Below, piece by piece: positions 2,504-24,584 of a DNA stretch of 64,000 nt. The stretch lies in sequence record MZ574431.2. One strand, given 5' to 3'. The first letter of the stretch is position 1. Each line of letters starts with the position of its first letter. The translations under genes were made by a program, and so were the position numbers. Under the pieces are notes generated by a model, which worked only from the letters and a program-made list of their open reading frames with translations, was not told the DNA's origin and did not search any database.

Positions 2504-2885
2504 GACGCGGAAAATCGCCCAAAATCGTGGATTTTGGGGTCAAAATGGCCATTTTTAGCGGTTTTTCGGCCGATTTTGGGCCTTCTAGCCCGTTTTTGGG
2601 TTAATTTCGGCGAGTCGCCCGGTTTTGGGTGTGCCCTGAGCGGCGGCGCGCGACCTGTCGTGATCCCAGGTCGCGCGCGGGTCAATGCAGGAGCCAGAGC
2701 AGGAACGCCAGCGTCAGCAGTGACCATCCGTTCAAAAGCTTCAGGCGCTCGCCTCCTTGGTTGCCGTGGCCGCTCGCCACGTTCAGACCCTAGCGCATAA
2801 GAAAAGTGTTGCCAAGCCCAACAATGCAGTTGACAGCATAATTCTGCTATGCGACAAAGGCTCATCGAAACGAGGAGCCGCCCAC

Positions 2886-3026
2886 ATGTGGGAAGTCAAG
2901 ACCTTCAAGACCCGCCTCGCCAAGGAGGCCTGGATCGCCCGCAATGAGGCGCGTTACCAGATCGTCGAGATCGTGGTCGCCAACGCCTACGGCGTCGAAT
3001 TCAAGCCCCTGCGACGCATCGGCTAG
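2886..3026 (+). CDS. hypothetical early protein (46 aa)
   Basis: GAGGAG SD, first gene after promoter 2830. Confidence 0.75.
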   Translation: MWEVKTFKTRLAKEAWIARNEARYQIVEIVVANAYGVEFKPLRRIG

Positions 3027-3045
3027 ACACGAAAGGAAAGCCCCC

Positions 3046-3237
3046 ATGATTCCGCCCGAGGTCCTCAACCCGCGCGACTACTGGACCCCCATCGCCACGC
3101 GTCAGAAAGCCGAGGCCCTCGCCGAACGCTACGCGGTGGACGACTACGAGGCGCCCGGAACCTACACCGTCGAAGAAAAGGGCGCGGCCTTCGCCATCGC
3201 CTATTACGAAGACGGCGAATTCATCGCCTACGTCTAG
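3046..3237 (+). CDS. hypothetical early protein
   Basis: AAGGA SD; followed by terminator. Confidence 0.75.
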   Translation: MIPPEVLNPRDYWTPIATRQKAEALAERYAVDDYEAPGTYTVEEKGAAFAIAYYEDGEFIAYV

Positions 3238-3243
3238 GCCAGA

Positions 3244-3276
3244 CCCGGCGCCCCCTCCCCAGGGCGCCGGGTTTTT
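3244..3276 (+). terminator. intrinsic terminator
   Basis: CCCGGCGCCC/GGGCGCCGGG stem plus T5. Confidence 0.85.
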
Positions 3277-3450
3277 CCTGGCGCCCAGCCGTTAAGGTTA
3301 ACCCGGCGTTAAGGTTAACGCCCCATTAGGGTTAACGCCGCGTTAGGGTTAATCGGCCATTAACCCTCCAGGCGAAAATAGTGCAAGAAAGCGGTTGACT
3401 GCATATCAGGCCTATGCGACAAGAGGGCGTCCCCAACGAGGAGGCCTCTC

Positions 3451-4086
3451 ATGGCTCTGCCGGAACACCTTTTCATCGCCGATCACGGCGACCTCTACGA
3501 TACCAGCGTCGAAGGCTGGAGCGCCAAGGCGCCCCTGCGCCGCGCCTATCGCGTCGCCCTGCCCAAAATCGAGAGCATGGGCCACGTCAAGGCCGCGCTG
3601 CGCTATGGCGACACGACTGACCTGGGCGGCTATCCGCTCTACTTCGTCACGCGCGATGGCGCGGCGCTGTCGTTCGAGAGCGCCCGCAAGATGCTCTATC
3701 AGATCGCGCTCGACTTCCAAGCCGACGCCTCGACCGGCTGGCGCATCGCCGCCGTCCAGATCAACTATGAGGACGGCGACTTGCGTTGCGATCATAGTGG
3801 CGAGCGCATCCCCTGCGCCTACAATGACCCCGAAGTCATGGCCTGGGCGAGCGGCTCCAACGTGTCGGGCTTCATGCCGGACAACGAGCCTTCCCATCAT
3901 GCGACCTGGGAAGAGGCCCGCGACGCGCTCAAGCAAGACATCGAATTCGCGCGCGAGGCCTGCGAGGAGGGGAGCGAGGAGGACGGCCAATTCGCCCACG
4001 TCCTCGACGTCCTGGCCACGCTCCAAGAGGGCGCGGAATTCAACTACGGCGCCAACGGTTACCGTTGGTGGGTCGAAAAGCTCTAG
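3451..4086 (+). CDS. hypothetical early protein
   Basis: GAGG SD after promoter 3395; contains GGYPLYFVTRDG motif. Confidence 0.85.
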   Translation: MALPEHLFIADHGDLYDTSVEGWSAKAPLRRAYRVALPKIESMGHVKAALRYGDTTDLGGYPLYFVTRDGAALSFESARKMLYQIALDFQADASTGWRIAAVQINYEDGDLRCDHSGERIPCAYNDPEVMAWASGSNVSGFMPDNEPSHHATWEEARDALKQDIEFAREACEEGSEEDGQFAHVLDVLATLQEGAEFNYGANGYRWWVEKL

Positions 4087-4100
4087 CGAAAGGAACGCCC

Positions 4101-4247
4101 ATGTTCATCCTGATTGTCGGCAATCCCGTCGATGGCTACGCCTATTATGGTCCCTTCCATGACCATGACGATGCGACCAACTATGCCGAGAACACCGGCA
4201 CGGAAGGAAACCCTTGGTGGGTCGCGCCGCTTGAAGAGGCCGAGTAA
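4101..4247 (+). CDS. hypothetical early protein (48 aa)
   Basis: AAGGA SD, MFILIVGNPVDGY. Confidence 0.75.
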   Translation: MFILIVGNPVDGYAYYGPFHDHDDATNYAENTGTEGNPWWVAPLEEAE

Positions 4248-4284
4248 CCCCGCGATCTAAACCCCCTTTAAGAGGAGACCGCCC

Positions 4285-4587
4285 ATGGGCGCCGACTGTT
4301 TTGTGACCACCGCCAAGGGCAAGAACGCCAAGGAAGCGTTTCGCGACGCCGTGGACGAAGCCCAGTATAAATATGGCCATGGTGGCTATACCGGAACCAT
4401 CGCCGAAAAGCACGAATTCGCCATGGACAAGGGTTTCAAGCCCGACCCCGCGAGCGAAAAGACGGTGATCGAGCAAGCCCAAGACTACGCCTGGACCAAG
4501 GTCGAGGACGAAGACAAATATGGGCCTGCCGTGTGCCTGGACCTGGGCGAAGGTCAATTCCTGTTCTACGGCGTCGCCAAATGCTAG
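4285..4587 (+). CDS. hypothetical early protein
   Basis: GAGGAG SD; YGHGGYTGTIAEK motif. Confidence 0.85.
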   Translation: MGADCFVTTAKGKNAKEAFRDAVDEAQYKYGHGGYTGTIAEKHEFAMDKGFKPDPASEKTVIEQAQDYAWTKVEDEDKYGPAVCLDLGEGQFLFYGVAKC

Positions 4588-4590
4588 GCG

Positions 4591-4617
4591 AGTCCAGGCC
4601 TTCGCGGCCTGGGCTTT
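4591..4617 (+). terminator. probable intrinsic terminator
   Basis: CCAGGCC/GGCCTGG stem then CTTT. Confidence 0.6.
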
Positions 4618-4765
4618 GCCCTCCCGCCGGCGTTAACCTTAACGCGGCATTAGGGTTAACGCCGGCCGCCCAGGCTGTTAACCACCTTGCGAAAATAGTG
4701 CAAGAAAGCTGTTGACTGCATCAAAGCCCCATGCGACAAGAGGTCATCGAAACGGGAGACACCCC

Positions 4766-5317
4766 ATGACCGACAAGACCACCGACCTGCTCTATCCGCA
4801 AACCCTGCTGGCCCAGAACCTGCCGGGTCGCCCCGGCATGCTGCCGGCCTGGATCGTGCTGCGCGACATGGGGCCGAAATCCCATCACCGCTACGTCACC
4901 CATATGCGGCTCGAATATCCGGCCATTGACGAGGCCGGCCCGAAATACGGCTTTGACCATGGCCATTATTTCGCCGACCTGCGCGAGGCGATCGAAGACT
5001 ATAGCCAGCGCTGCGCCGATAAGGTCATGAGCGCCATGCGCCAAGCCTACGACGTACCGCGCGCGCCGGACAAGCCGCGCACCGTGACCCTGCCGCTGGG
5101 CGTGGTCCAGGCCGCCTATGGCCTGATCGACGGCAACACCTTCGACCTCAACGCCGCCACCGAGGACAAGGACTTGGTGAACGCCACCGAGGAGGCGCTT
5201 CGCGAGGCCCTGGGCTCCGATCGCTTTTTCCGCGATGTCGAAGCCGCCTCCAAGGCGCTCGCCGACGCCTACCGCGCCGCCAATCAACCGCCGGCCGAGG
5301 AGACCGCCCATGGCTGA
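4766..5317 (+). CDS. hypothetical early protein
   Basis: GGGAGACACCCC-ATG leader after promoter 4712. Confidence 0.85.
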   Translation: MTDKTTDLLYPQTLLAQNLPGRPGMLPAWIVLRDMGPKSHHRYVTHMRLEYPAIDEAGPKYGFDHGHYFADLREAIEDYSQRCADKVMSAMRQAYDVPRAPDKPRTVTLPLGVVQAAYGLIDGNTFDLNAATEDKDLVNATEEALREALGSDRFFRDVEAASKALADAYRAANQPPAEETAHG

Positions 5318-5825
5318 TTATGAGGCCTATGTGGTCTTGGACAAGCGCCGTCGCCATGTGGCGACGGTGACGTTCAAATTCACCGAAAGCCAAGTGACGG
5401 CCACCGTCGTCACGCCGTGGTCGGCGCCGGAGTCCCTGGCGCGCATCGCCAAGGTCAAGGGCTGGGTGATCGATCAAAACCGGCTCATCGATCCTGCGAC
5501 CGGCAAGGCCGTGGCCTATGTCTCCAAGGTCCAGGAGCAGACCGGCAAGGCCGGCGGCTACGGCTACGACAAGCGCGCCGCCTCGCTCGCCGGCCTCTAT
5601 GTCGATGGCCACGAGATGGGCGACCATTCGTCCAGCCTCGGCGCCCCGAAAAAGCCCAAAGGCGCCGACCTCTACCCGGCCGACTTCACCCCGCCCAAGG
5701 GCTACCGGCTGGCCAACTACCAGAGCGCCACCGAGACCAAGGAAGCCGGCTATATGTCGTGTTTCCGCGAGCAAGGGCTGAACTACCTGACCGCCCTGGG
5801 CTACGACGTTATCCAGGCGCTCTAA
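5310..5825 (+). CDS. hypothetical early protein
   Basis: GAGGAG SD, overlaps previous stop; GKAGGYGYDKRAAS motif. Confidence 0.85.
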   Translation: MADYEAYVVLDKRRRHVATVTFKFTESQVTATVVTPWSAPESLARIAKVKGWVIDQNRLIDPATGKAVAYVSKVQEQTGKAGGYGYDKRAASLAGLYVDGHEMGDHSSSLGAPKKPKGADLYPADFTPPKGYRLANYQSATETKEAGYMSCFREQGLNYLTALGYDVIQAL

Positions 5826-5829
5826 GGCG

Positions 5830-5854
5830 AAGGCCCGCCACACCGGCGGGCTTT
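5830..5854 (+). terminator. intrinsic terminator
   Basis: GCCCGCC/GGCGGGC stem plus TTT. Confidence 0.7.
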
Positions 5855-6040
5855 CTGCTGGCCCTAGGCGTTAACCTTAACCGGGCGTTAGGGTTAACGG
5901 GGCGTAAACAAACATGGTTAACGCGGCCCATGGTCAGCCCAGGCGAAAAGGTGCAAGAAAGCTGTTGACAGCATTTCGACCCCATGCGACAAGGGGGCTC
6001 CAAACAACGCCAACGCCCCAAGCGGGCAGGGAGACACCCC

Positions 6041-6622
6041 ATGGCCCTGGTCACCGAATCCTTCGCCGTCGACATCGACTGCACCCGCGCCCTGACCCCT
6101 GCCGAGCGGCGCGGTCTGGCCGCCGCCATCGCCCATCTGCTGGCCATCAACATCGATAAGGTCGAGCCCGAGCCGGGCGGCTACCTGACCGCCAATATCG
6201 GCCGCGTTCGCCCGGCCGGCATGACCGGCGAGGCCGGCCGCGAGGCGCGGATCAGGACCGAGGCCCTGACCAGCCTCGACCATGACGCCCCGGTCGCCCT
6301 GACCCTGGAGTGTGGCGGCAGCGTCGATGTCATCGCCCGCTTCTACACCATGGCCGACGCCGAAACCTACCTCAACGAAAACCCGGAAATCGACCCGGTG
6401 TCGCTGAACCTGGGCTGCTACGGCATCGACGCCCCCTATGGCGTGGCCAGCGATGCCGACGCTGATAAGCTGCTCTACGACCTGGGCTATCGCCTGCACG
6501 CCACGGCCGGCGGCTCCTGGACCTTCACCGACCCGAAGGGCTATCTCTGGGACGGCGGCGCCAAGCGTGAGGCCGTGGTCATGATCGCCCTGGCGCAAGC
6601 CGCCCAAATCGAGGAGGCGTAA
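6041..6622 (+). CDS. hypothetical early protein
   Basis: GGGAGACACCCC-ATG leader. Confidence 0.85.
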   Translation: MALVTESFAVDIDCTRALTPAERRGLAAAIAHLLAINIDKVEPEPGGYLTANIGRVRPAGMTGEAGREARIRTEALTSLDHDAPVALTLECGGSVDVIARFYTMADAETYLNENPEIDPVSLNLGCYGIDAPYGVASDADADKLLYDLGYRLHATAGGSWTFTDPKGYLWDGGAKREAVVMIALAQAAQIEEA

Positions 6623-6627
6623 ACGCC

Positions 6628-7053
6628 ATGACCCGCTATTCGATCATGGTCGAGGTCCAGACCCTCGCCGACAGCGAAACCCAGGCCCGCAAGGACGTTG
6701 AATTCGCCATCATTGAGGGCCGGTTCCCCGAGCACATGAATTGGATGGTTCGCCAGAGCGCCCCTTGCGCCGGCGAGACCGTCCAGGCCGATGACACCCC
6801 CACCCGCTGGGCGACCTTTGTCGGTCAAGCCTGGGTCCAGGGCCACAGCATGGAGGTGGACGACGCGCGCGTGCGCTACGGGATCACCGACGCCGAATTC
6901 AACGCCAATGGCGGCGATGAGCCCGCCGACTTCGACGCCCTGGCCCAAGCCGCCCGCGCCCCGCAATGGGTCAAGGACTGGTCAGGCCCGTTCGACGTCT
7001 ATATTTCCGACATCGAGGACGGGGAAGACCCCGAGGAAGTGCGCCAGCTATGA
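6628..7053 (+). CDS. hypothetical early protein
   Basis: GGAGG SD, acidic 141 aa. Confidence 0.85.
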   Translation: MTRYSIMVEVQTLADSETQARKDVEFAIIEGRFPEHMNWMVRQSAPCAGETVQADDTPTRWATFVGQAWVQGHSMEVDDARVRYGITDAEFNANGGDEPADFDALAQAARAPQWVKDWSGPFDVYISDIEDGEDPEEVRQL

Positions 7054-7600
7054 AACGCCGCCACAGCCTTTATTTGCTGGTGATCAACACCGGCCCCTGG
7101 TGATCCTCCAGGCGCCGGCCGATTTCCTGCGCTGGGACATCCACCGCGCCGCCATCCTGCGCATGATGCGCCGTGACCATGGCGTCAAGGCCAAGGACGT
7201 TCACGCCATCGAAGGCCTCGCCGGCTCGCCCTACGGCGCCGACGATGACCGCGAGGCCCTGGGCAAGCTCAAGGAAACCTTCGCGGGCCTGCGCCACGGC
7301 TTCGCCGCCTTCCACCTCTACACCTGGGACGGCAAGGACTATCAGCCCTTGCGCGAGCCCCTGACGCGCCCGCAAGGCCTTGTTCGCCTCCTAGGCCCCT
7401 ATCCGCCGCCGAGCGGCGTCTATGGGCCGCACGCGCGCAAGACCGCCTCCCACGTCTATCAGGTCTTCAACGCCGATGGCGTCAAGCTGGTGGGCGGCTC
7501 GTTCGGCCCCGATCCTGACGCGGCCCTGGCCTATGCCCGCGCCCAAGCCGCCGCCAAGGGCTACCCTGACCCGGCGGTCGAGATCGTCACCCCGAATTAA
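7050..7600 (+). pseudogene. hypothetical protein split by an apparent 1-nt deletion in the C-run at 7094-7097
   Basis: ATG 7050 frame stops at 7101-7103; one extra C gives continuous MKRRHSLYLLVINTGPLVILQAPADF...EIVTPN. Confidence 0.6.
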
Positions 7601-7685
7601 ATGCAAGAAAACTGTTGACAGCCTTTCGGGGCCATGCGAGAACAAGGCTCAAGACGAGACAAGAGACAGCCAAGAGGAGGACATC

Positions 7686-7694
7686 ATGAAGTAG
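7686..7694 (+). CDS. Met-Lys-stop minigene
   Basis: AGGAGG-ACATC-ATG AAG TAG directly after promoter 7615; twin at 33972-33980 (-). Confidence 0.55.
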   Translation: MK

Positions 7695-7715
7695 CGACAA
7701 TCTGGAGCACACCTC

Positions 7716-8174
7716 ATGAATGTATTCGTCCGCGACGATCTTTTTCAAACCGATCTCGACGAGTGTGGTGACCCGCTTCTGGGTCGCGTCTTCTACGTCG
7801 TTGTCGAGGATCAGAACGGCGCCCGCATCGCCCACGATCGTTGTTTCTACGATCACCGGCGCGTCACCGATGAGGATGGCTTCGCCTTCTGGCAAGCCCT
7901 CTCTTACGAAGACGTCGCCGCCGAGGAAGCCAAGGCGAAAGCCCTGGCCGCCAAGATCGAGAGCCATCTGGCGCGGGGCGGCGCCCTGGACCCCGAGCAC
8001 TGGCGAGACATCGACCCGTGCTATGGCTCCAAGGCCTATGCCGATCTCGACCGGTTCGGCTACTTCCTGGCCAAGGAACGGGCCGCCGACCGCGATCGAG
8101 GCGAGAACGTCCCTGACAGCCCTTGGGACGGCATCGCCGCCATGGTCGATGGCCCCAACTGGTTCGACCGCTGA
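7716..8174 (+). CDS. hypothetical early protein
   Basis: GGAG SD; 152 aa. Confidence 0.8.
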   Translation: MNVFVRDDLFQTDLDECGDPLLGRVFYVVVEDQNGARIAHDRCFYDHRRVTDEDGFAFWQALSYEDVAAEEAKAKALAAKIESHLARGGALDPEHWRDIDPCYGSKAYADLDRFGYFLAKERAADRDRGENVPDSPWDGIAAMVDGPNWFDR

Positions 8175-8178
8175 TCTT

Positions 8179-8206
8179 AAGGCCTCGCCACCCGGCGGGG
8201 CCTTTT
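8179..8206 (+). terminator. intrinsic terminator
   Basis: GGCCTCGCC/GGCGGGGCC stem plus T4. Confidence 0.7.
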
Positions 8207-8347
8207 GACCACCGCCTGGGCGTTAACCTTAACCGCCCGTTAGGGTTAACCCCGTCGCGCCCGGCGTTAACCCTGTGGCGCAAGAAAGCTGTTGACAGCA
8301 TATCAGCCCCATGCGACAAGAGCCCATCACAACGAAGGAGGTCGCCC

Positions 8348-9025
8348 ATGGGCGCCGGCATTTCAAAGACCGCACTGAACGCCCGCGTTCGGCGCCGCCT
8401 GCAAAACTTCGCCCACGCCAACGGTGGGACCTACGCCAAATATCAGGCCCAAGGCGTCAAGGACGGCCTGCCCTGGACCAAGGGCGTCAACGTACTTCGC
8501 GCCTCCAATGGCGAGACCTTTGGCCTTGACTGCATCGTCATCGGTCAGGGCGAGGCCGCCCGCCCCTACGGCTTTTCCGACCTCGATAGCGCGATCCTGG
8601 CCTATCGCCTGGACGAGGCCGAAACCGGCGCGGCGATCTTCGCGGGCCAGCGCGGCGATTACAAGCGCTTGATCGGCCGGCGTAGCCCGTTCATCCAGAC
8701 CTGGGGCTTTGACTATTGCCTCGCCCTGGAGTTGGACGACGGCGGGTTTACGCTCTTTCGCCCGAACGGGACCATGCTTCCCTTCCGGGGCGAGGCCGCC
8801 GACAGTTGGGCGCGTGAGCTTTGGGTTCTGTTGCCCAAGGTCTACCGCCGCCACGACGAGCGCAAGCCGCTCTATCGCAGCGAGGCGATCGCCCAAGCCC
8901 AGGCCCTGGACCTGTGGGCCAGCCAGTTCGCCGACGAGGATTGGACCACCGCCGGGGATGACTGGCGCGGCAAGCCCGACCACTACAAAGGCCCCCGCAA
9001 CCTGCCCCACGGCGACCCGCTCTAG
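8348..9025 (+). CDS. hypothetical early protein
   Basis: AAGGAGG SD after promoter 8292. Confidence 0.8.
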   Translation: MGAGISKTALNARVRRRLQNFAHANGGTYAKYQAQGVKDGLPWTKGVNVLRASNGETFGLDCIVIGQGEAARPYGFSDLDSAILAYRLDEAETGAAIFAGQRGDYKRLIGRRSPFIQTWGFDYCLALELDDGGFTLFRPNGTMLPFRGEAADSWARELWVLLPKVYRRHDERKPLYRSEAIAQAQALDLWASQFADEDWTTAGDDWRGKPDHYKGPRNLPHGDPL

Positions 9026-9179
9026 CCAGAGGATCACCCAGGCCCCGCGCCTGGGTTCGATCCTTGCCGCGTCCGTTAACCCTAACACGGCGTTAAGGTT
9101 GACAAAAATAAATGCAAGAAAGCTGTTGACAGCATCGAAGCCACATGCGACAAGAGGTCATCGAAACGGGAGACACCCC

Positions 9180-9680
9180 ATGAACGACCAATATCCGCCC
9201 CTGACCGATGGCCAGCAAGCGGCCCTGGTCGCCTTCGCCGACCAGCATGGCGGCCTGGGCGAGGCCTGGAAGGAAGCCCTCGGCGACGCCTGGAGGACGT
9301 GCAGCGAGCCCGAGGCCCTCAAGGCCGACCTGCGAACCATCCGCAACACCTATGGCCCCTCCTGGCTCTATGATGAATATGCCTGGGGCTGGCGCCCGAC
9401 CCTGCCGGAGTGGGAGCGCGCCGGGCGCTGGACCGACACCCCGCCGCAGCCGACGCCGGGCAAGGCCCGCTGGAGCGCGTCGTTCGACCCGCCGGCCATC
9501 GGCGAGCGCGTCCGGGTGACCACCAACGGCCTGGGCTGGGCGAGGGTCACCGGCTACTTCGTCGAAGGCGACTGGCTGGGCGTGATCGTCAAGCTTGAAG
9601 CCCCGGCCGACTGGTATGTCAAGCAGAACGGCGGCAACGTCCCCGGCCACAGCTTCGGAACCGAAATCGCCCTGGATTAA
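9180..9680 (+). CDS. hypothetical early protein
   Basis: Leader identical to that of gene 4766; WKEAL...IRNTYGPSWL motif. Confidence 0.85.
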   Translation: MNDQYPPLTDGQQAALVAFADQHGGLGEAWKEALGDAWRTCSEPEALKADLRTIRNTYGPSWLYDEYAWGWRPTLPEWERAGRWTDTPPQPTPGKARWSASFDPPAIGERVRVTTNGLGWARVTGYFVEGDWLGVIVKLEAPADWYVKQNGGNVPGHSFGTEIALD

Positions 9681-9892
9681 CCATCTGGGACTAGCCTGGG
9701 CGGCCCTGGCTGGGAAACCAGCCGGGGCGCAAGGCCGCCGGCCGGCGTTAAGGTTAACCTCTCTCGCCCGGCAGTTAAGGTTAAACCCGCCGCCCAGGCC
9801 GTTAACCAAGGCGCCCAAGAAAGTGCAAGAAAGCTGTTGACAAGCATCTAGGCCACATGCGACAAGAGGGCATCACAACGGGAGACACCCCC

Positions 9893-10746: not shown

Positions 10747-10757
10747 GACTCCTGCAT

Positions 10758-10788
10758 CGCCCCGGCCTCATCGCCGGGGCGTCTTTTT
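10758..10788 (+). terminator. intrinsic terminator
   Basis: CGCCCCGGC/GCCGGGGCG stem plus T5. Confidence 0.8.
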
Positions 10789-11900: not shown

Positions 11901-11904
11901 TCGC

Positions 11905-15088: not shown

Positions 15089-15100
15089 GAAAGGCCACCC

Positions 15101-16871: not shown

Positions 16872-17036
16872 GGCCCTGGCCCGCCCTGACCCGGCGGGCC
16901 TTTCTTTCGCCGATCGCCGTTAACCCTAACCGCCCGTTAGGGTTAACGCCAAAGAAACTACAAGAAAGCTGTTGACACGCATAGCGGCCCTATGCGAGAA
17001 CGTCCCTGCCGCATTGGCGGCCTGGAGACCTATGCC

Positions 17037-17615
17037 ATGACCCGCGATTTCGTTCCGCACGTCATCACCGCCCGCACCATCGACGGCGCCTGCTATTTCA
17101 TCGGCGGCCAGACCTATGGCGATCACCTGGGCCACGCCCGCGTCATGACCAAGGACGACGCCGAACGCCGCGTCGGCGCCCTCCAGCGCCTGGAGCGCGC
17201 CAGCGCCGAGACCCGCCGCGCCAACGACCCCCATGAGGACGACTTTTCGGGCGTCTATGGGCTCGCCGTCGTGGCCACGACCTGGGAAGCCCTGGACAAG
17301 GCCGCCGAGGCGGTCAAGACCTGGGAAGAGGCCGACCTTGCCGCCGAGGAGGCTCACGACGCCCTTTATGACGACTATGACCCGAACGAGGGCATGAGCG
17401 CCGAGGAGATCGCCGCCGAAAGCGCGTGGTGGCGCGAGCAGATGGCCAAGGACCAGCCTTTCGCCCCTGGCCAGTCGGTGACCATCACCGATGAGCTTCA
17501 CCCCGACCACGGCGCCAGCGCCCGCGTCGTCGAAGCCGAGCAATCGGGCTATCTGGTGCTTGCCCTGGGCGAGCGCCTGACCTGGGGCTTGGCCAAGGGC
17601 GTGGCCGCCGCCTAA
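17037..17615 (+). CDS. hypothetical early protein
   Basis: GGAG SD after promoter 16972. Confidence 0.8.
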   Translation: MTRDFVPHVITARTIDGACYFIGGQTYGDHLGHARVMTKDDAERRVGALQRLERASAETRRANDPHEDDFSGVYGLAVVATTWEALDKAAEAVKTWEEADLAAEEAHDALYDDYDPNEGMSAEEIAAESAWWREQMAKDQPFAPGQSVTITDELHPDHGASARVVEAEQSGYLVLALGERLTWGLAKGVAAA

Positions 17616-17617
17616 AG

Positions 17618-17647
17618 AAAAAGGCCCTGGCGAGCGCCGGGGCCTTT
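17618..17647. terminator. bidirectional intrinsic terminator
   Basis: A5-GGCCCTGGC-GAGC-GCCGGGGCC-TTT between convergent genes. Confidence 0.75.
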
Positions 17648-17686: not shown

Positions 17687-17923
17687 TTAATCCTTGGCCG
17701 AGCGCCGATGCGGGTTCGAGCGAAGCCATGTGTCGGCTTCGGTGCGGGTCGAGAACGGCGCCCCGCCAATGCCCGTGGTTCCGTCATCCCATTGGATCGT
17801 CCAGCCGACCTGAATGACTTCCCAGTCCTGGGAGACGCCGAACGGGATCGTAGCATGGATAGGGATACGGTTATGGGGCGGGCGCTTGAGTTGGCGCACC
17901 CGCGCCGGGATCACTTGCGGCAT
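17687..17923 (-). CDS. hypothetical protein, the only leftward gene in the early region
   Basis: AGGA SD; own TTGACA-N16-TACTTT promoter; bidirectional terminator downstream. Confidence 0.6.
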   Translation of the reverse strand: MPQVIPARVRQLKRPPHNRIPIHATIPFGVSQDWEVIQVGWTIQWDDGTTGIGGAPFSTRTEADTWLRSNPHRRSAKD

Positions 17924-17965: not shown

Positions 17966-17993
17966 AAAGTACCACGCCGCCGGCCCATGTCAA
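17966..17993 (-). promoter_or_regulatory. sigma70-type leftward promoter
   Basis: Minus strand TTGACA (17993-17988), 16 nt, TACTTT (17971-17966), with TG extension. Confidence 0.55.
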
Positions 17994-18097
17994 GAACGGC
18001 GCCACGGGTCAAGAATCGCGACTCAAGGCGCAAGAAAACTGTTGACACGCATCGCGCCGCCATGCGACAAAGGCTCAGCACAACAGGGACACCCGCC

Positions 18098-18541
18098 ATG
18101 AACCTCGAAGACTGGTTTTACCCTTCCTCCGACATCTCCAACTCTGACCAGACCATCGACTCCCGCGACGTCATCAAGCGGGTCGATGAACTGCAAGCCG
18201 CTTTCGATGACGCCGAGATCGATCCTGATCAGGTGCTCGCCGACGACGAGCTAGACCTGGGCAAGGACGCCGAGGAAATCCGCGACGCCGCCCAAGAGCT
18301 TAAGGCGCTCAAGGACTTCGCCGAGGAGGGCGAGAACTACGCCGCCGACTGGACGAGCGGCGAAACCCTGATCCGAGAAAGCTATTTCGTCGAGTATGCC
18401 GAGCAGCTTTGCAAGGACATCGGCGACCTGCCCGACAACATCCCCGGCTATCTGGCCATTGACTGGGAAAAGACCGCCAACAACATCAAGGCCGATTACT
18501 CCGAAATCGAGTTTGACGGCGTCACCTATCTGGTCCGCTAA
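18098..18541 (+). CDS. acidic protein with ArdA-like C-terminus (putative DNA mimic)
   Basis: YFVEYAEQLCKDIGDLPDNIPGYLAIDWEKTANNIKADY resembles the ArdA C-terminal pattern; strongly D/E-rich. Confidence 0.5.
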   Translation: MNLEDWFYPSSDISNSDQTIDSRDVIKRVDELQAAFDDAEIDPDQVLADDELDLGKDAEEIRDAAQELKALKDFAEEGENYAADWTSGETLIRESYFVEYAEQLCKDIGDLPDNIPGYLAIDWEKTANNIKADYSEIEFDGVTYLVR

Positions 18542-18855
18542 GGCGAGCGGCCGGCGTCCCCTGGGCGCCGGCCTTTCCCTGGCCACGATCGGTTAACCTT
18601 AACGCCTGGGGCCAGACGGTTAAGGTTAACGCAAGGCCCTGGCGAGGGAACGTCAAGGCCGCGAGCTAGGATTACTCGCGAATGGCTTAGCCGGCGTCCA
18701 GCCGGCGGCGCCTTCGACCACCGCGAGGCGGCCTTGACCCTGACAGTCTCGCCCAAGCGCCGCGCCATGTCAACCGATTTCTTATGTGCAAGAAACCTGT
18801 TGACAGCATGTCCGCCCCATGCGAGAAAGCCTCATCATTCACTGGGAACGACCCC

Positions 18856-19515
18856 ATGCCCCGCACCGTCACCAAACAGGTCTACAAGTTCACCGAACTG
18901 AGCGACAAGGCCAAAGCCAAGGCCGTCGAGTGGTATCGCGAGCTTGAGATGCAAGAAACCGGCTGGTGGGATTACGTCTATGAAGAGGCCGACCGCATCG
19001 CCGACGCCTTCGGGATCACGCTCAATCGCAGCGAAGCCGGCAAGCCCATGTCCGGCCCCGACATCCTGTTCAGCGGCTTCTACAGCCAAGGCGACGGCGC
19101 CTGTTTCCAAGGCCGCTACGCCAGCCCCCAAATCCCGGCCGTGGAGGGCTTCGCCGCCCTCGGGATCGAAGACGACAACCTCAAGGCCCTCGCCGTGCGC
19201 CTGGACGCTCTGAGCGCCAAGACCGGCGGACGCCTGACGACCGTGGTTCGCCACAGCGGTTACTATTATCACGAGTATTGCACCGCCTTCGAAACCGAAC
19301 TGACCGACCCTGAAGACGGTTCGGACTTCGACCCCTACGCCTATGACGTGGAGGATGAAAAGGAACTGGTCGACATCCTGCGCCGGTTCATGAAGTGGAT
19401 TTATCGTCAGCTTGAAGAGGCCGATGAGGCCCGCCTGTCTGACGAGACGATCACCGAAGCCCTCGCCGACTCCGACTACGAGTTTGAGGCCAGCGGGGCG
19501 CCGACCAGAGACTAG
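18856..19515 (+). CDS. conserved-looking phage protein
   Basis: VYKFTELSDKAKAKA and FSGFYSQGDGACF motifs; after promoter 18800. Confidence 0.85.
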   Translation: MPRTVTKQVYKFTELSDKAKAKAVEWYRELEMQETGWWDYVYEEADRIADAFGITLNRSEAGKPMSGPDILFSGFYSQGDGACFQGRYASPQIPAVEGFAALGIEDDNLKALAVRLDALSAKTGGRLTTVVRHSGYYYHEYCTAFETELTDPEDGSDFDPYAYDVEDEKELVDILRRFMKWIYRQLEEADEARLSDETITEALADSDYEFEASGAPTRD

Positions 19516-19705
19516 GCCAAGACGGCGCCCGGCCCTCCCGCCGGGCGCCGATCGTGGTTAACGCCGTGTCGGGTTTTTGTAACCTTAACCCTCTGTTAAG
19601 GTTAATGAAAAAGGCCCTTTCCGTTAACCACGAATAATGCGAGAAAGCTGTTGACACGCATCGCAGCCCCATGCGACAAAGGGCCATCGCAACGGGAGAC
19701 ACCCC

Positions 19706-19993
19706 ATGACGAAACAAGCCCCAAAGCGCCGCAAGCGCTACCCGCCCAAGAGCGACGCGGCCAAGGCCCGCGCCGCCGCCAAGAGCAAGGCGTTTTTCGC
19801 CCGCCACGCCCTCAAGGCCACCGAGGCGGCTATCGCCGCCATGGCGGCGGGCGATCAAAAGGCCGTCCAACGCCACGCCAAGGACGCCCGGCGCCTCAAT
19901 CGCTGGATGTGCCACAAGCGCGACATCGCCGCCGCCTTCAAGGCCGTGTTCGACATCCGCGCCGCCGCTCAAGCCCTGCGAACCGCCGCATGA
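19706..19993 (+). CDS. basic Ala-rich hypothetical protein
   Basis: GGGAGACACCCC-ATG leader. Confidence 0.85.
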   Translation: MTKQAPKRRKRYPPKSDAAKARAAAKSKAFFARHALKATEAAIAAMAAGDQKAVQRHAKDARRLNRWMCHKRDIAAAFKAVFDIRAAAQALRTAA

Positions 19994-20205
19994 TCCGCCG
20001 CCCCGCCCTCATGACCTGCATCGCCGGCGCCGCCCTCATCCTGTCGGGCGTGGCCGTTTCGGCCGCCAGCGCCCCGGAAAAGCGGGTTCTCGTCGGTCAA
20101 TACTGCGACGGCGACCCCGTGCGCCTCTATGGCCTGGAGGACGGCGAGGAAGCCGCCCAAGCCTGCGCCATCGTCGAGGTCCACGCCCTGCCGAAAGGAC
20201 TCTGA
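19990..20205 (+). CDS. small protein with N-terminal signal-like segment
   Basis: ATGA overlap; MIRRPALMTCIAGAALILSGVAVSA. Confidence 0.7.
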   Translation: MIRRPALMTCIAGAALILSGVAVSAASAPEKRVLVGQYCDGDPVRLYGLEDGEEAAQACAIVEVHALPKGL

Positions 20206-20207
20206 CC

Positions 20208-20666
20208 ATGCCCGGACATCCCGCCTTCGATCTTGATGAGCGCGAAGCCGCCGCCGTCATTGCCGGCCTGCGCCTGCTGCAACGCATCGGCGTGCCGGTC
20301 GAGCTAGAAGACGTCGCCACCAACGGCGGCGCCTTCGACGTGCTCGATGACACCGCCATCGACGCGCTCTGCGAGCGCATCAATCTGGACCTGACCACCA
20401 CGCCGCCGCCCGTGCTGATCGAGAGCCGCGAGGAGCCGGTTCGCGTCGAGGACCTCAAGGGCGGCATGATGTGCGACCTTGAGGGCGACATGTTCGCCGA
20501 CAACGCCGGCCGTTACCCCGAATTCGAGTTCGCCTATGCCGTCGTTGTCGAGGTGCAGGTCAACCCGAAGGGCGAGCCGCCTGGAACCGTGATCGTCGAG
20601 TTCGACAAGATCACCGTGGCCTTTCCCATCGGCCACACCCTGCCGACCATCAAGGACCCGCAATAA
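20208..20666 (+). CDS. hypothetical early protein
   Basis: AAGGA SD. Confidence 0.8.
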   Translation: MPGHPAFDLDEREAAAVIAGLRLLQRIGVPVELEDVATNGGAFDVLDDTAIDALCERINLDLTTTPPPVLIESREEPVRVEDLKGGMMCDLEGDMFADNAGRYPEFEFAYAVVVEVQVNPKGEPPGTVIVEFDKITVAFPIGHTLPTIKDPQ

Positions 20667-20747
20667 AACGCAAGAAAGCTGTTGACAGCATAATCAGCCT
20701 ATGCGAGAAAGGATCGTCAAAGGCGATCCCGCCTCGTGGAGACACCC

Positions 20748-21092
20748 ATGAAACTGGTCAAGTCCAACATCATCGACAACCACCGCATGACGGCGCTGCG
20801 CAACTGCATCACCGTCGCCATCGAGCGCTTTCAAGAGCACGTCGATGAGATGAAGCCGGCCGCCGAGCAATACGAGGCCGCCGACGACGCGGGCAAGAAG
20901 GCCCTGGAAGCGGCCACGCCCATGGTTCACCCTCGCGTCTATCGCCAGCTTTCCGACCAGTTCGAGGGCCAGATCGAAGAAGCCCGCAAGCTGCTGGACT
21001 GGCTGGACGGCGACGCCTACCAAGACGCCTCGGGCGAGTTCCCCGAAGGCACCGATTTCGTCGTCGTCGCCGGCCTCGTCCGCGACTACTGA
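20748..21092 (+). CDS. hypothetical early protein
   Basis: GGAGACACCC-ATG leader. Confidence 0.85.
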   Translation: MKLVKSNIIDNHRMTALRNCITVAIERFQEHVDEMKPAAEQYEAADDAGKKALEAATPMVHPRVYRQLSDQFEGQIEEARKLLDWLDGDAYQDASGEFPEGTDFVVVAGLVRDY

Positions 21093-21099
21093 CCAAGCC

Positions 21100-21126
21100 A
21101 AGGCCCGCCTCACCGGCGGGCCTTTT
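21100..21126 (+). terminator. intrinsic terminator
   Basis: AAGGCCCGCC/GGCGGGCCTTTT. Confidence 0.85.
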
Positions 21127-21268
21127 CCTCGCCAGCCCACGTTAACCTTAACGCCGCGTTAGGGTTAACGGCGGGCCGGTTTTCGTTAACCAAAGAAAAT
21201 GCAAGAAACCTGTTGACTGACATCTTGGTTCTATGCGACAAAGGCCCATCACCAACGGGAACGCTCCC

Positions 21269-21667
21269 ATGACCCAAGACCTGACCACCGAAGAACGCAA
21301 CGCCAAGCTCGCCGAAATGGCCGATCACTGGCGCGAGCAACTCAAGGTCGCCCAGGCTCGCCTTGACATGACCGTGCTGGTCGGCAAGGGCTTTATCTGC
21401 GCCCTGGACCGCGATCAATCGATGGCGATCCGCGCCGATGGTCCCGACCGCTATCGCCTGTGGCCGGTGTCGGCGCACCTGACCCACCTCCTCCACTTCA
21501 CCAAGCTTGACGCCATGCGGGTCGCCGCCCATTGGAACGCGCGCCTCCCCGACGACAAGCAAGACCTGCGAGTGAGCGCCATCCACTACCGCGACGCGCT
21601 CAAAACCTTCGTGGAAGTGGCCAAGTCGCAAATCGCCTGGATCGAAGGCGGCTGCAAGGCGGCCTGA
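21269..21667 (+). CDS. hypothetical early protein
   Basis: GGGA SD after promoter 21213. Confidence 0.8.
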   Translation: MTQDLTTEERNAKLAEMADHWREQLKVAQARLDMTVLVGKGFICALDRDQSMAIRADGPDRYRLWPVSAHLTHLLHFTKLDAMRVAAHWNARLPDDKQDLRVSAIHYRDALKTFVEVAKSQIAWIEGGCKAA

Positions 21668-21883
21668 TCTTGACGCCCTCCGGCTCCGGCCGGAGGGTTA
21701 ATTTTTGGCCAGCCTGCATTAACCTTAACGCGCAACCGTTCTCAGGTTAACCTTAACGTGAAAACGGTTGCAGGTTAACCTTAACCCCGCCCGCCCAGGC
21801 CTTAACCAAACCTCGCGAGAAAACTGTTGACTCGCATCGAGGCCCCATGCGACAAGGTGACATCGACAACCGGAGGCCCTTCC

Positions 21884-22540
21884 ATGGCCAGCCCTGAAGA
21901 CATCGCCACCGTCCAAGCCGCCGCCGTCTCTTTCGACCTGGAAGCGTGGGAAGCGGAAAAAGGCGAGTATGCCGAGGCTCATTGGCGTTATCTGAACTAC
22001 GCCTTTGAAATCGAGACCTATTCGCACATGTTCAGCCAAGCCGAACGCGACGCCGCGCGCCGTCTCATCGAAGAATATGAGACCGCCCAGACCGACCATC
22101 AAGGCACCTATGTTGACGAGAGCGCCGCGCTCATCGCCAGCGCCGACGCCTTCACCCGCCAATATATCGCCAGCGCCCTTTGGACCGGCGTCGAGTTGCC
22201 CTATGGCGACGACCGCGCCGACAGCGGCGGCGCCTATGACCTCGAAGAGGATTCGATCATCCCCGCCACGCTGCGCGACATGATCGAAGATTGCGCCACC
22301 TTCCAACGCGACAACGCCGACACCCTGGCCAAGGCCTATGAGTCGGACGTGTATATTCAAGGCGAGCGCTACAACGCCAGCAACGCGGGGCACGATTTTT
22401 GGCTGACCCGCAACGGCCATGGCGCGGGCTTTTGGGATCGCGGCCTAGAAGAGGTCGGCGAGGCCCTGACCAAGGCCTGCAAGGCGTTCGGGGAATACTA
22501 TCTCGCCATGAGCGACAACGGCGAAATCTCCAAGATGTGA
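21884..22540 (+). CDS. hypothetical protein with AGHDFWLTRNGHGAGFWDRG motif
   Basis: GGAGG SD; paralog of 13903..14304. Confidence 0.85.
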   Translation: MASPEDIATVQAAAVSFDLEAWEAEKGEYAEAHWRYLNYAFEIETYSHMFSQAERDAARRLIEEYETAQTDHQGTYVDESAALIASADAFTRQYIASALWTGVELPYGDDRADSGGAYDLEEDSIIPATLRDMIEDCATFQRDNADTLAKAYESDVYIQGERYNASNAGHDFWLTRNGHGAGFWDRGLEEVGEALTKACKAFGEYYLAMSDNGEISKM

Positions 22541-22545
22541 CGATC

Positions 22546-22573
22546 AAGGCCCGCGCTTGACGCGGGCCTTTTT
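22546..22573 (+). terminator. intrinsic terminator
   Basis: AAGGCCCGCG/CGCGGGCCTTTTT. Confidence 0.85.
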
Positions 22574-22700
22574 CTGCCCCGTCCGGGTTAACCTTAACGC
22601 CGGGCGACTTTCCGTTAACCGAAGAAAATGCAAGAAAGCTGTTGACTCGCATCTTCGTTATATGCGAACTTGACGACATCGGAAATCAAGGAACGCCGAC

Positions 22701-23075
22701 ATGGCTAAGACCGAAACCGTCGACCTCGCCCTGGTCATGCTCGATGAGAGCAAGGCCGCCAAGGGCGCCCCGCGCGCCTTCACGTTCGGCGAAGTCCGCG
22801 AGGCCTTCACCGACGCGCACGCCTTGACGTTGCTTCAAGCGCGCTTGCGCCAGATCAACGAAAACGAGTGCAACGGCTATCGCGACGAAACCGCCGAACG
22901 CCTGGACGCGCGCCGCGAGGAGCGCGCTAAGGCCGCCGTCGCCGAGATCGCCAAGCGCTACGGCCTGACCTTCCATTTCAACGGCGATCCGCGCGGGTCG
23001 GCGCTGAAGCTGAAGACGCCTCACACCGGCCGTTATAACGGCTTTGGCGGCCGTGAGGATGGTTGGGCCGTCTAG
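22701..23075 (+). CDS. hypothetical early protein
   Basis: AAGGA SD; ENECNG and NGDPRG motifs. Confidence 0.85.
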   Translation: MAKTETVDLALVMLDESKAAKGAPRAFTFGEVREAFTDAHALTLLQARLRQINENECNGYRDETAERLDARREERAKAAVAEIAKRYGLTFHFNGDPRGSALKLKTPHTGRYNGFGGREDGWAV

Positions 23076-23143
23076 GCCCAACTTGACGCCGCTTCACCCC
23101 CTGTAACGCGTCCCCTTCCACCCCTAGGCCTTGGAGACACACA

Positions 23144-23353
23144 ATGGCCCGCACTGCCGATCACACCACCGCCGACCGTACCCGCGCCCCTCGCGACCTC
23201 GCGCCGTGGGAACTCGACGCCGAACGCCGCCGCGCGCGCAAGGCTTCCAAGTCCTGGCGCGCCGAACGCAAGGGCGTGCGCTCGATGGGCGACTATGCCC
23301 AGGGCGACGACATGCGCACCCTCGCCGATGGGGCCGATTTCTACCCGAACTAG
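23144..23353 (+). CDS. hypothetical early protein
   Basis: GGAGACACACA-ATG. Confidence 0.75.
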   Translation: MARTADHTTADRTRAPRDLAPWELDAERRRARKASKSWRAERKGVRSMGDYAQGDDMRTLADGADFYPN

Positions 23354-23455
23354 GGCGCGCCCTGGCCAGCGAAAAAAAGTGCCGTCAACGCAAGAAAGGC
23401 GTTGACGGCATAATCGCCATATGCGACAAAGGCTCATCGGCAACGGAGACACGCC

Positions 23456-23650
23456 ATGACCTTCCACCACAACCTGATGAGCAAGCTGGACGCGGCCCAA
23501 ATGGCGGGCGAAATGACCTACGCCCAACACGCCGACATGCGCGCCACGCTGCGGGCCTCCAACATGCGCGGTCAAGTCTTCACCTCGATGGATGAACTGC
23601 GCAAGGCCTGCAAGGGCGCCGGTCGCGACTTCCAAGGCCGGTTCGCCTAA
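23456..23650 (+). CDS. hypothetical protein, duplicate of 24341..24535
   Basis: 53 of 64 aa identical to the paralog. Confidence 0.9.
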   Translation: MTFHHNLMSKLDAAQMAGEMTYAQHADMRATLRASNMRGQVFTSMDELRKACKGAGRDFQGRFA

Positions 23651-23666
23651 GACCCCCTCCCCTGAG

Positions 23667-23692
23667 AGGCCCGCCCTAGAGGCGGGCTTTTT
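23667..23692 (+). terminator. intrinsic terminator
   Basis: GCCCGCC/GGCGGGC plus T5. Confidence 0.85.
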
Positions 23693-23880
23693 CTTGGCCG
23701 TTAGCCTACCGTTAAGGTTAACCCCCAGGCCCTCTGGGGTTAACCCTAACGCCGCGTTAAGGTTAACCCCGGCGGCCCAGGCCTTAACCATGACAAGGAA
23801 AAAAGATCGCTTTCCTGCGAGAAAGCTGTTGACCGCATAAAGGCGATATGCGACAAAGGGTCATCAACGGAGCAAGTCCA

Positions 23881-24051
23881 ATGTCCTTCCGCCTCGCCCT
23901 TACCGAAGACGCCCGCTTCACCGCCGCCCGTGGCGCGGTCCGCACCGTCCGCGAGCAAGCCCGCCCGGCGCCGCACAAGGACATTGACGGCAAGGCCCTG
24001 CTGGCGCCCGCCTCGGCGCTGGACCGCATCCGCGCCGTTCTCGGGAACTGA
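23881..24051 (+). CDS. hypothetical early protein
   Basis: GGAG SD after promoter 23829. Confidence 0.75.
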   Translation: MSFRLALTEDARFTAARGAVRTVREQARPAPHKDIDGKALLAPASALDRIRAVLGN

Positions 24052-24054
24052 GTC

Positions 24055-24246
24055 ATGAAGGTCATCGCGCACTATGCCAACGGCCTGCAACGGGTCATCC
24101 CCTGCGAGACCTCGCAAGAGGCTGTGGCCGCGATCAAGGCGGCTCTGACCTATGATCGCGCCGCCAAGTTCACGCTTGACAAGCGCCTTGCCTCGGCGAT
24201 CCCGACCCGCGCCGCCTCCGAACGGGTTTGGCTGTTGAGCGCGTGA
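24055..24246 (+). CDS. hypothetical early protein
   Basis: Follows previous stop by 3 nt. Confidence 0.75.
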   Translation: MKVIAHYANGLQRVIPCETSQEAVAAIKAALTYDRAAKFTLDKRLASAIPTRAASERVWLLSA

Positions 24247-24340
24247 GGGCGATCGAAAAAAGATCGCCTCACCGCAAAAAACCTGTTGACTCGCATAAGG
24301 CCCCTATGCGATAAAAGGTCATCGGCAACGGAGACACGCC

Positions 24341-24535
24341 ATGACCTTCCACCACACCATGATGAGCAAGCTGGACGCGGCGATGATGTCGGGCGAACTG
24401 ACCTACGCGCAACACAGCGACATGCGCGCGGCCCTCCGCGCCGCCAACATGAGCGGCCAAGTCTTCACCTCGATGAACGAGCTTCGCGCCGCTTGCAAGG
24501 GCGCGGGCCGCGACTTCCAAGGCCGGTTCGCTTAA
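24341..24535 (+). CDS. hypothetical protein, duplicate of 23456..23650
   Basis: Same CATCGGCAACGGAGACACGCC-ATG leader; 53/64 identity. Confidence 0.9.
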   Translation: MTFHHTMMSKLDAAMMSGELTYAQHSDMRAALRAANMSGQVFTSMNELRAACKGAGRDFQGRFA

Positions 24536-24558
24536 GAGCCGGCAACCTTACTGACCAG

Positions 24559-24584
24559 AGCCCGCCCTTCGAGGCGGGCTTTTT
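24559..24584 (+). terminator. intrinsic terminator ending the early region
   Basis: AGCCCGCC/GGCGGGCT plus T4. Confidence 0.85.

Follow-up and report, generated by a model that had tools for sequence, protein, structure and literature searches.

The terminal repeat of Caulobacter phage J4 as an array of 24 units with a shared host-type promoter-leader module, a probable CtrA-linked subset and a probable role in cassette rearrangement

The direct terminal repeat (DTR) of Caulobacter phage J4 carries a series of 24 small same-strand gene units, each led by a shared promoter-leader module. We interpret it, with a probability of roughly three in four, as an early-gene array of autonomous units that share a host-type promoter, include a subset probably linked to the host cell-cycle response regulator CtrA, and carry modules that double as recombination substrates. 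The window analyzed here is the 64,000-nucleotide stretch that corresponds to bases 1-64000 of record MZ574431.2, with 100% identity to that record over the array. J4 (Bertelyvirus, Dolichocephalovirinae) has a genome of 312,338 bp, and its recorded host is C. vibrioides CB15. GenBank annotates the left DTR as a repeat_region at 1-24723 (24,723 bp, plus strand), and an identical right copy lies at ~287.6-312.3 kb. With this boundary, the array occupies almost all of the coding portion of the DTR, and the annotation agrees with the terminal-repeat location claimed in a first-pass annotation made from the letters alone. All 47 DTR genes are labelled "hypothetical" in GenBank.

According to this interpretation, host RNA polymerase would transcribe the units early, as general phage biology suggests, and CtrA would bind the junctions of paired 12-mers and modulate a subset of the units, as published work on relatives suggests. 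An intrinsic terminator would close most units. Because the promoter-leader modules are dispersed direct repeats, they would also serve as substrates for ordinary homologous, unequal recombination, which would produce tandem duplication and amplification of cassettes, as the chimeric junctions of the relative BL47 indicate. Over longer times, the same process would lead to the permutation and replacement of whole cassettes, as in CcrSC and CcrBL9.

The units hold one to five genes each and open with a common module of ~75 nt, AAGAAAGCTG-TTGACA-17/18 nt-TGcGACAAR-leader-GGAGA-ATG. The module is composed of an A-rich upstream element (AAGAAAG), the -35 hexamer TTGACA, a spacer (17 nt in 14 units and 18 nt in 10), the extended -10 TGcGACAAR, read as an extended "TG" followed by the hexamer GACAAR, and a leader of ~25 nt with the ribosome-binding site GGAGA. 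The consensus of the 24 copies is tGCAAGAAAGCTG-TTGACA-gcat-N-cATGCGACAAaggctCAtCa..aacgGGAGACaCCCC-ATG, and GCAT is present in 22 of them. A regular-expression scan and an anchored listing placed 24 promoter motifs, all on the plus strand, between 2830 and 24286 and none at 24.7-64 kb (each promoter is located below by the first T of its TTGAC), so that the 24 cassettes of one to five genes counted in the first pass stand. The -35/upstream part AAGAAAGCTGTTGAC, with up to two mismatches, had 24 matches in the window compared with 0.04 expected from shuffles. Twenty-three of these lie at promoters, with the promoter at 2830 unmatched, and the remaining one is on the minus strand at 18769-18783. 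A blastn search of the phage collection found the motif in Caulobacter Bertelyvirus records only. An exact-pattern scan of IMG/VR returned CcrSC, CcrBL9, and six low-GC single matches that have none of the other motifs and were rejected as chance.

The module fits a promoter of the host housekeeping sigma factor. The Caulobacter housekeeping consensus is reportedly TTGACGS-N10-14-GCTANAWC, with which the module is compatible. A generic scan for sigma-70 promoters and terminators detected neither the array promoters nor most of the terminators, because the -10 is of a non-TATAAT type and the T-runs are short. A dyad, GCAT-N8/9-ATGC, lies between the -35 and the -10 in 22 of the 24 promoters (for example at 9131-9147) and could be a candidate operator for a regulator such as an early shut-off factor. 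Elsewhere in the J4 genome, ~14 copies of the -35/upstream element AAGAAAGCTGTTGACA occur at 178-275 kb (four minus-strand copies at 178-185 kb, ten plus-strand copies at 204-275 kb), all without the DTR-type GCAT...ATGCGACAA part. These copies suggest a second promoter class with the same upstream half; since they lack the DTR-type -10 region, the DTR promoters form a distinct class.

An all-versus-all BLASTP comparison of the 47 DTR proteins found only two related pairs, gp044/gp047 and, weakly, gp025/gp041; therefore, it is largely unrelated genes that have these flanks in common, as the first-pass annotation had stated. Its three exact identities are present in the sequence: a 39-nt leader (4731-4769 = 9145-9183, in cassettes 3 and 7), a 26-nt terminator (13182-13207, in cassette 10, = 15923-15948), and TTTTGACCACCGCCTGGG, found at 8203 and 10785 just 5' of the palindromes at 8222 and 10803. 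A GC hairpin with a T-run ends 16-17 of the 24 units. The grammar proposed in the first pass, namely terminator, 29-bp palindrome, and promoter, describes some units and not others, given 10 convergent 12-mer pairs, 15 of 24 promoters with sites, and terminators in 16-17 of 24 units.

The repeated element that had been described as a 29-bp palindrome is present; it is in fact a pair of 12-mers, GTTAACCYTAAC, which produce at their junction a box resembling the CtrA consensus TTAA-N7-TTAA, a likeness that had gone unrecognized, and its arms are usually non-identical, a CCT form being paired with a CCC form. With up to one mismatch, GTTAACCYTAAC has 46 matches in the window compared with 0.04 expected, and 45 of them fall within 555-23767. 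In the whole genome (312 kb), 90 of 94 matches lie inside the two DTR copies, the same skew as that of the CtrA arrays of phiCbK-like phages. The 12-mers are spaced at 17 nt (convergent or tandem) or 27-28 nt, with the inner TTAA separated by N7 or N17-18, and the inner half-sites are thus 11 or ~21-22 bp apart, near one or two helical turns. Convergent pairs at the 17-nt spacing number 10. TTAA-N7-TTAA boxes with up to one mismatch number 20 in the window, all at 2-24 kb, and most palindromes give one single-mismatch box. Apart from the site at 555 and a cluster at 2244-2478, all sites lie 25-210 nt 5' of a TTGAC promoter and are intergenic, and the 140 nt in front of the promoter contain a TTAA 12-mer or half-site in 15 of the 24 units, which carry one to four 12-mer copies. 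A TTAACC(A/C) half-site often stands 25-35 nt 5' of the -35; the positions of these proximal half-sites cluster at 25-29, 34-37, and 45-54 nt, counts to which orthologous promoters contribute non-independently, and the pattern is suggestive of helical phasing, for which we make no claim.

Site status is conserved by cassette. It is the same in J4 and CcrSC for 21 of 22 orthologous cassettes, despite DNA identity of ~70-80%: sites are retained in CcrSC by every one of the 13 site-bearing J4 promoters that have an orthologue there, and eight of nine site-less ones stay site-less. The pattern speaks for early units of two functionally distinct classes. The CtrA consensus is TTAA-N7-TTAA. Mascolo et al. 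(2022, PMC9437464) found predicted sites concentrated between genes in the DTRs of phiCbK-like phages, CcrSC and CcrBL9 among them, and demonstrated that the phiCbK gp005 and gp018 promoters are bound and activated by CtrA. Binding together with a change in expression has been shown for these two phiCbK genes, phage Delta, and Cp1R7A-A1 only. The supplement of that study lists CcrSC sites such as GTTAACGGCGGATTAAC, the exact junction of two 12-mers, and the junctions it lists for CcrSC are the same as those of J4; the published matrix scores the equivalent CcrSC junctions at 9-17, with a maximum of 17.2 (PMC9437464). Because the 12-mer pairs resemble the site type bound by CtrA, it is probable, judging from this work on relatives, that a conserved subset of the early units is tied to CtrA activity through these predicted sites.

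It is also conceivable, although unlikely, that the 12-mers are operators for a phage-encoded or non-CtrA host factor and that their likeness to TTAA-N7-TTAA is partial and incidental. The conservation of the 12-mers far exceeds what a CtrA box needs, exact TTAA-N7-TTAA boxes number only five in the window, and one of the two inner half-sites in each palindrome usually carries a mismatch (CTAA or TTAG). In the validated phiCbK promoters, moreover, the CtrA box replaces or overlaps the -35, whereas J4 has a complete TTGACA/extended -10 with the sites 25-110 nt 5' of it. These features count against a CtrA link. A 27-base palindrome pattern is also nearly absent from bacteria, with a single match among 185,579 bacterial species genomes. 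That match is in Thalassovita taeanensis NZ_FOEP01000004.1 (5670-5696 of the examined stretch), intergenic and beside a LuxR-type regulator gene, and is anecdotal. On the other hand, the published matrix scores exactly such junctions in CcrSC up to its maximum, the 17 and 27-28 nt spacings hold the inner TTAA about one to two helical turns apart as in CtrA boxes, and none of the DTR proteins showed a DNA-binding domain. A second CtrA motif is said to be TTAACCAT, which the TTAACC(A/C) half-sites 5' of the -35 resemble.

Evidence that the modules recombine comes from BL47. Within the shared DTR it matches J4 at ~99.5% identity, but the BL47 repeat measures 30,174 bp against 24,723 bp, and the excess consists of three tandem duplications. 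The first, of 1429 bp, corresponds to J4 cassettes 19-20 and lies between 85-nt repeats (21154-21238 and 22583-22667); its junction is a hybrid promoter, a mosaic of the two parent promoters. The second involves an 885-bp unit (cassettes 23-24) present in five copies, the three internal ones being 100% identical. At its internal junction, a gp047-type promoter is joined to a gp044-type coding sequence, and the switch point falls inside ~38 nt common to both arms (leader, ribosome-binding site, and first codons). Homologous exchange within the shared module thus accounts for two of the three events, and none occurred at a palindrome. The third, of 454 bp, is exactly gp027 plus gp028 (J4 14944-15397). 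A literature search found no paper on the BL47/J4 DTR duplications or on a shared promoter-leader module, the isolating laboratory's own paper being outside that search.

Older rearrangements are visible in CcrSC and CcrBL9. By tblastn and blastn, the right two-thirds of the array is collinear with both, while on the left side the cassettes gp005-6, gp007-9, gp010-11, gp012-14, and gp015 have been permuted as wholes. The J4 gp order 5-6/7-9/10-11/12-14/15/16/17/18/19 onwards corresponds in CcrSC to 10/7-8/15/12-14/17/18/5-6/19 onwards, with 16 missing. In all six left-side cases, a rearranged block in CcrBL9 or CcrSC has its start at a distance of 0-30 nt from the module's 5' edge, and in CcrBL9 the promoter context of J4 cassette 1 is fused, inside the promoter-leader, to the gp010 orthologue. 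Cassette order and content in relatives, which the first-pass annotation had named as the check on its shuffling proposal, accordingly show whole-cassette permutation in CcrSC and CcrBL9 and duplications in BL47. The breakpoints outside the intergenic repeats that it had named as contrary evidence are not the pattern found, given the chimeric BL47 junctions and the enrichment of block ends in the modules described below. Shuffling at intergenic repeats survives as crossovers in the promoter and leader; none was found at the palindrome, within-operon events are about as frequent, and the 454-bp duplication proceeded without homology.

Ends of homology blocks are enriched in the promoter modules: those lying between -120 and +60 relative to a promoter number 13 of 32 for J4-CcrSC, 12 of 30 for J4-CcrBL9, and 7 of 12 for CcrSC-CcrBL9 (P = 0.005, 0.009, and 0.004 against a 20% background). 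Several points weigh against the recombination part of our interpretation. Conserved promoter sequence tends to attract the ends of BLAST blocks, and the first two comparisons share J4 and are hence non-independent. Selection for intact units alone could leave the surviving breakpoints between units. Inside operons, genes are gained and lost about as often as whole-cassette events occur (gp009, 011, 013, 022, and 025 are absent from relatives and gp027 is relocated), and the 454-bp duplication has no homology at its junction or ends. The identical tandem copies of BL47 are known from the deposited sequence alone, and promoter use, early timing, and CtrA binding in J4 are predicted. Most of these points would suit a purely regulatory layout in which the likeness of the flanks reflects promoter constraint and the shuffling comes down to ordinary mosaicism at gene boundaries that selection has filtered, or to an artefact of assembly. 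Paralogous promoters are also hardly more alike than orthologous ones and hold little phylogenetic signal: when each J4 module was set beside its CcrSC orthologue and its best J4 paralogue, the latter was the nearer one in 16 of 22 cases by small margins, and only 7 of the 22 had the orthologue as their best match in CcrSC. As a test of concerted evolution, this comparison was uninformative apart from the 4712/9126 pair at 91%, because functional constraint swamps the signal. Nevertheless, two independent BL47 junctions are chimeric with their switch points inside the shared module, the six left-side blocks all start at its 5' edge, and an identical 39-nt leader stands on two unrelated genes; we consider a purely regulatory explanation improbable. 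An integron-like, site-specific system that uses the 29-bp palindromes to capture and reorder cassettes is barely credible and was rejected, since, although palindromes flank many cassettes in superficial likeness to attC sites, the mapped junctions are in the promoter/leader and are typical of homologous exchange, 9 of 24 units lack a 12-mer or half-site within 140 nt upstream (the five-copy unit of BL47 includes one), and no integrase or recombinase domain was found among the DTR proteins (Pfam for 40 products, PHROGs for 20).

The plasticity of the array may be either selected for or a by-product of promoter reuse. The "recombination-driven library" of the first-pass annotation holds insofar as rearrangement occurs in shared modules; the adaptive design it implies is not shown by the data. 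We tentatively raise a stronger version, which is less likely to be right than wrong: the module would be a selected device of portable homology for rapid amplification, deletion, and reordering of Bertelyvirus early accessory genes, offering an accordion-like dosage route together with the conserved split into CtrA-linked and CtrA-independent units. If this is true, the five-copy identical 885-bp unit of BL47 would be an example of dosage adaptation to host defences or cell-cycle state.

The closest working parallel is found in the promoter-early stem-loop (PeSL) cassettes of T4-type phages (Arbiol et al. 2010, PMC2839356; Comeau et al. 2014, PMC4122927). Both systems repeat small composite terminator/promoter motifs among small orphan genes (non-essential in PeSL), and in both the junctions of gain, loss, and replacement between close relatives fall in the motifs, with identical flanks on unrelated genes. 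The composite motif, which in PeSL couples a stem-loop terminator to a strong sigma-70-like early promoter, is recognizable in J4 as 24 near-consensus predicted promoters with 16-17 units preceded by a GC hairpin and T-run. The region is plastic, with 47 small genes, 46 of them without an assignable function, whose content varies between relatives. The junctions include the chimeric ones of BL47 and the enriched block ends, although many gains and losses within operons deviate. The two systems differ in that J4 belongs to an unrelated phage lineage, the Dolichocephalovirinae, and its motif, confined to Caulobacter Bertelyvirus records, is unrelated in sequence. The J4 module, unlike PeSL, also has arrays of transcription-factor sites and a shared leader reaching into the translated region, and it fills a terminal repeat, whereas PeSL cassettes lie in internal hyperplastic regions. 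In the PeSL system, recombination of neighbouring motifs also gives rise to mini-circles. Since the differences between relatives fall in the shared intergenic modules, the PeSL parallel drawn in the first pass is apt in the sense of working alike, but it describes an analogue and not a homologous member of the family.

The regulatory side resembles the DTRs of phiCbK-like phages with the "LPEG" signature (PMC9437464), in which, as in J4, predicted CtrA-type sites occur almost only in the DTR and lie in intergenic positions 5' of small genes without assigned function; the host and the subfamily Dolichocephalovirinae are the same. J4 was outside the phages analyzed in that study, and a shared promoter-leader module and its role in recombination are not described there. 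The pre-early (first-step-transfer) genes of phage T5 likewise combine a long non-permuted DTR with small host-promoter-driven genes presumed to act first, but without a uniform repeated module (textbook knowledge and PMC3556154). No homology to the T5 pre-early genes was found in J4, and no sign of two-step DNA entry. In poxvirus gene amplification "accordions," a small accessory-gene unit is tandemly amplified by recombination between flanking repeats. The 885-bp unit of BL47, with five copies of which three are identical, is similar, here without a known selective agent. The nearest counterparts of the J4 feature are the published CtrA-site-rich DTRs of CcrSC, CcrBL9, and phiCbK, to which J4 adds a further member and some fine anatomy. 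The feature is real, well defined, and largely explained by known biology.

The array is preceded by a non-coding stretch of ~680 nt (2150-2830), AT-richer and with several T/A runs, between a minus-strand open reading frame (ORF) and cassette 1. It contains a cluster of about ten TTAA 12-mers (2244-2478) at 17- and 27-nt spacings, preceded by TTGAC(G) repeats at 2150-2205, and may act as a regulatory hub or have to do with replication or packaging. phiCbK has a counterpart, a TTTTGACG-repeat plus 12-mer cluster at 1830-2104 (12-mer part, 1920-2104). All cassettes described below are on the plus strand. Cassette 1 (2810-3276) has its promoter at 2830 with no 12-mer within 140 nt upstream, gp005 and gp006, and a terminator hairpin with a T5 run ending at 3276. 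Cassette 2 (3291-4617) starts with four tandem 12-mers (3291-3353; 17-nt period), followed by the promoter at 3395, gp007-gp009, and a terminator ending at 4617. A palindrome (4632-4660) and a TTAACC half-site precede the promoter at 4712 in cassette 3 (4632-5854), which carries gp010-gp011 and a terminator ending at 5854. Cassette 4 (5870-7600; palindrome 5870-5898, promoter 5965, gp012-gp014) lacks a terminator and leaves a gap of 15 nt to the next promoter, that of cassette 5 (7595-8206; promoter 7615 without 12-mers, gp015, terminator end 8206). Cassette 6 (8222-9025), missing from CcrSC and CcrBL9, has a palindrome (8222-8250) with a half-site, a promoter at 8292, and gp016, and cassette 7 (9075-9680) has a palindrome (9075-9103), a promoter at 9126, and gp017.

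Cassette 8 (9747-10788) has 12-mers at 9747 and 9774 (27-nt spacing) with a half-site, a promoter at 9837, a gene at 9892-10746, and a terminator ending at 10788. The gene is split in J4, which has one base fewer near 10084 than BL47 and RB23, and codes for 285 amino acids in BL47 (gp019); the J4 annotation gives only the downstream part as gp018 (10090-10746). The 1-nt deletion may be either a real frameshift or a sequencing error. Cassette 9 (10803-12293) comprises a palindrome (10803-10831) with a TTAACCAT half-site, the promoter at 10876, and gp019-gp020, and the promoter of cassette 10 (12270-13207), at 12290 and without 12-mers, overlaps the 3' end of gp020 and leads gp021-gp023 and a terminator. 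In cassette 11 (13222-15397), a palindrome (13222-13250) and the promoter at 13294 precede gp024-gp028. The 198-nt gap from gp028 to the next promoter holds a possible unannotated hydrophobic ORF of 20 codons (MRLIEGGGFLALCFLLWLLH) at 15513-15575. Cassette 12 (15575-15949) has a promoter at 15595 without 12-mers, gp029, and a terminator ending at 15949. Cassette 13 (15963-16903) has a palindrome (15963-15991) with an exact TTAA-N7-TTAA at 15970, a promoter at 16063, gp030-gp031, and a terminator ending at 16903. Cassette 14 (16919-17647; palindrome 16919-16947, promoter 16972, gp032, terminator end 17647) is followed on its 3' side by gp033c (17687-17923), the sole minus-strand gene inside the array.

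Cassette 15 (18022-18576) has a promoter at 18042 without 12-mers, gp034, and a terminator ending at 18576. In cassette 16 (18592-19578), 12-mers at 18592 and 18619 (27-nt spacing) lie ~170-210 nt 5' of the TTGAC at 18800, and gp035 is followed by a hairpin with a T5 run ending at 19578. Cassette 17 (19585-20666) has an exact TTAA-N7-TTAA at 19585, a 12-mer at 19595, a half-site, a promoter at 19651, and gp036-gp038, without a terminator, and cassette 18 (20662-21130) has a promoter at 20682 without 12-mers, gp039, and a terminator at ~21099-21130. Cassette 19 (21141-21706) consists of a palindrome (21141-21169) with a half-site, a promoter at 21213, gp040, and a terminator ending at 21706. 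Three tandem 12-mers (21718, 21746, and 21774; 28-nt period) and a half-site precede the promoter at 21827 in cassette 20 (21718-22573), which carries gp041 and a terminator ending at 22573. Cassette 21 (22583-23353) has a 12-mer at 22587 with a half-site, a promoter at 22642, and gp042-gp043. Cassette 22 (23382-23692; promoter 23402 without 12-mers, gp044, terminator end 23692) and cassette 24 (24266-24584; promoter 24286 without 12-mers, the gp044 paralogue gp047, terminator end 24584) are 85% identical between 23408-23655 and 24293-24540. Between them, cassette 23 (23711-24246) has a 12-mer at 23711, a palindrome at 23739-23767, a TTAACCAT half-site, a promoter at 23829, and gp045-gp046.

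Searches of Pfam (40 products) and PHROGs (20) gave no usable function, and 46 of the 47 products are unassignable; one PHROG labelled "DNA ligase" is a family of 98 residues whose name probably stems from mis-annotation and was rejected. The gene gp034 is annotated at 17987-18541, with a start that lies 5' of its own promoter; its true start is probably at 18092, as suggested by the promoter, the ribosome-binding site, the ATG, and an alignment of relatives that begins at residue ~48. Its product scores 21.9 bits against the ArdA family PF07275, below the cut-off of 27, while 19 of 36 homologues match ArdA at E <= 0.01. The predicted model (pLDDT 91.5) has ArdA (2w82) as its top Foldseek match, a weak one (E = 0.6, TM-score 0.29; second-look Z-score 3.0), and a profile search of PDB sequences found nothing; with sequence and fold both below threshold, gp034 is weakly ArdA-like. 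Host takeover, the role proposed for the DTR genes in the first pass, would be suggested by where they lie, by their size, and by the parallel with T5-type terminal repeats. Rfam and tRNA scans of 1-26000 gave no match. The sole run returned by a search for read sets was a wastewater RNA run with 6% of the words, and no phage read set was found. Outside the array, a minus-strand ORF of 177 amino acids at 1632-2165 is annotated in BL47 and RB23 (gp005c) and not in the J4 record. At the right boundary of the J4 DTR, 453 nt (24719-25171) are missing from RB23, whose DTR starts 701 nt further left than that of J4.

The new content is modest, comprising mapped crossover points, two conserved promoter classes, and a layout that differs from that of phiCbK; for annotation, two start or frame calls are corrected, and one possible antirestriction gene is flagged. 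The analysis sharpens the CtrA story in that, in this genus, the predicted sites stand 5' of a complete host-type promoter and only in a conserved subset of units. Two classes of early genes are accordingly predicted, and synchronised Caulobacter cultures could separate them. The J4 array would offer a testable case outside the T4 group in which one regulatory module both organises immediate-early expression and may shape the gain, loss, and amplification of accessory genes in a jumbo phage.

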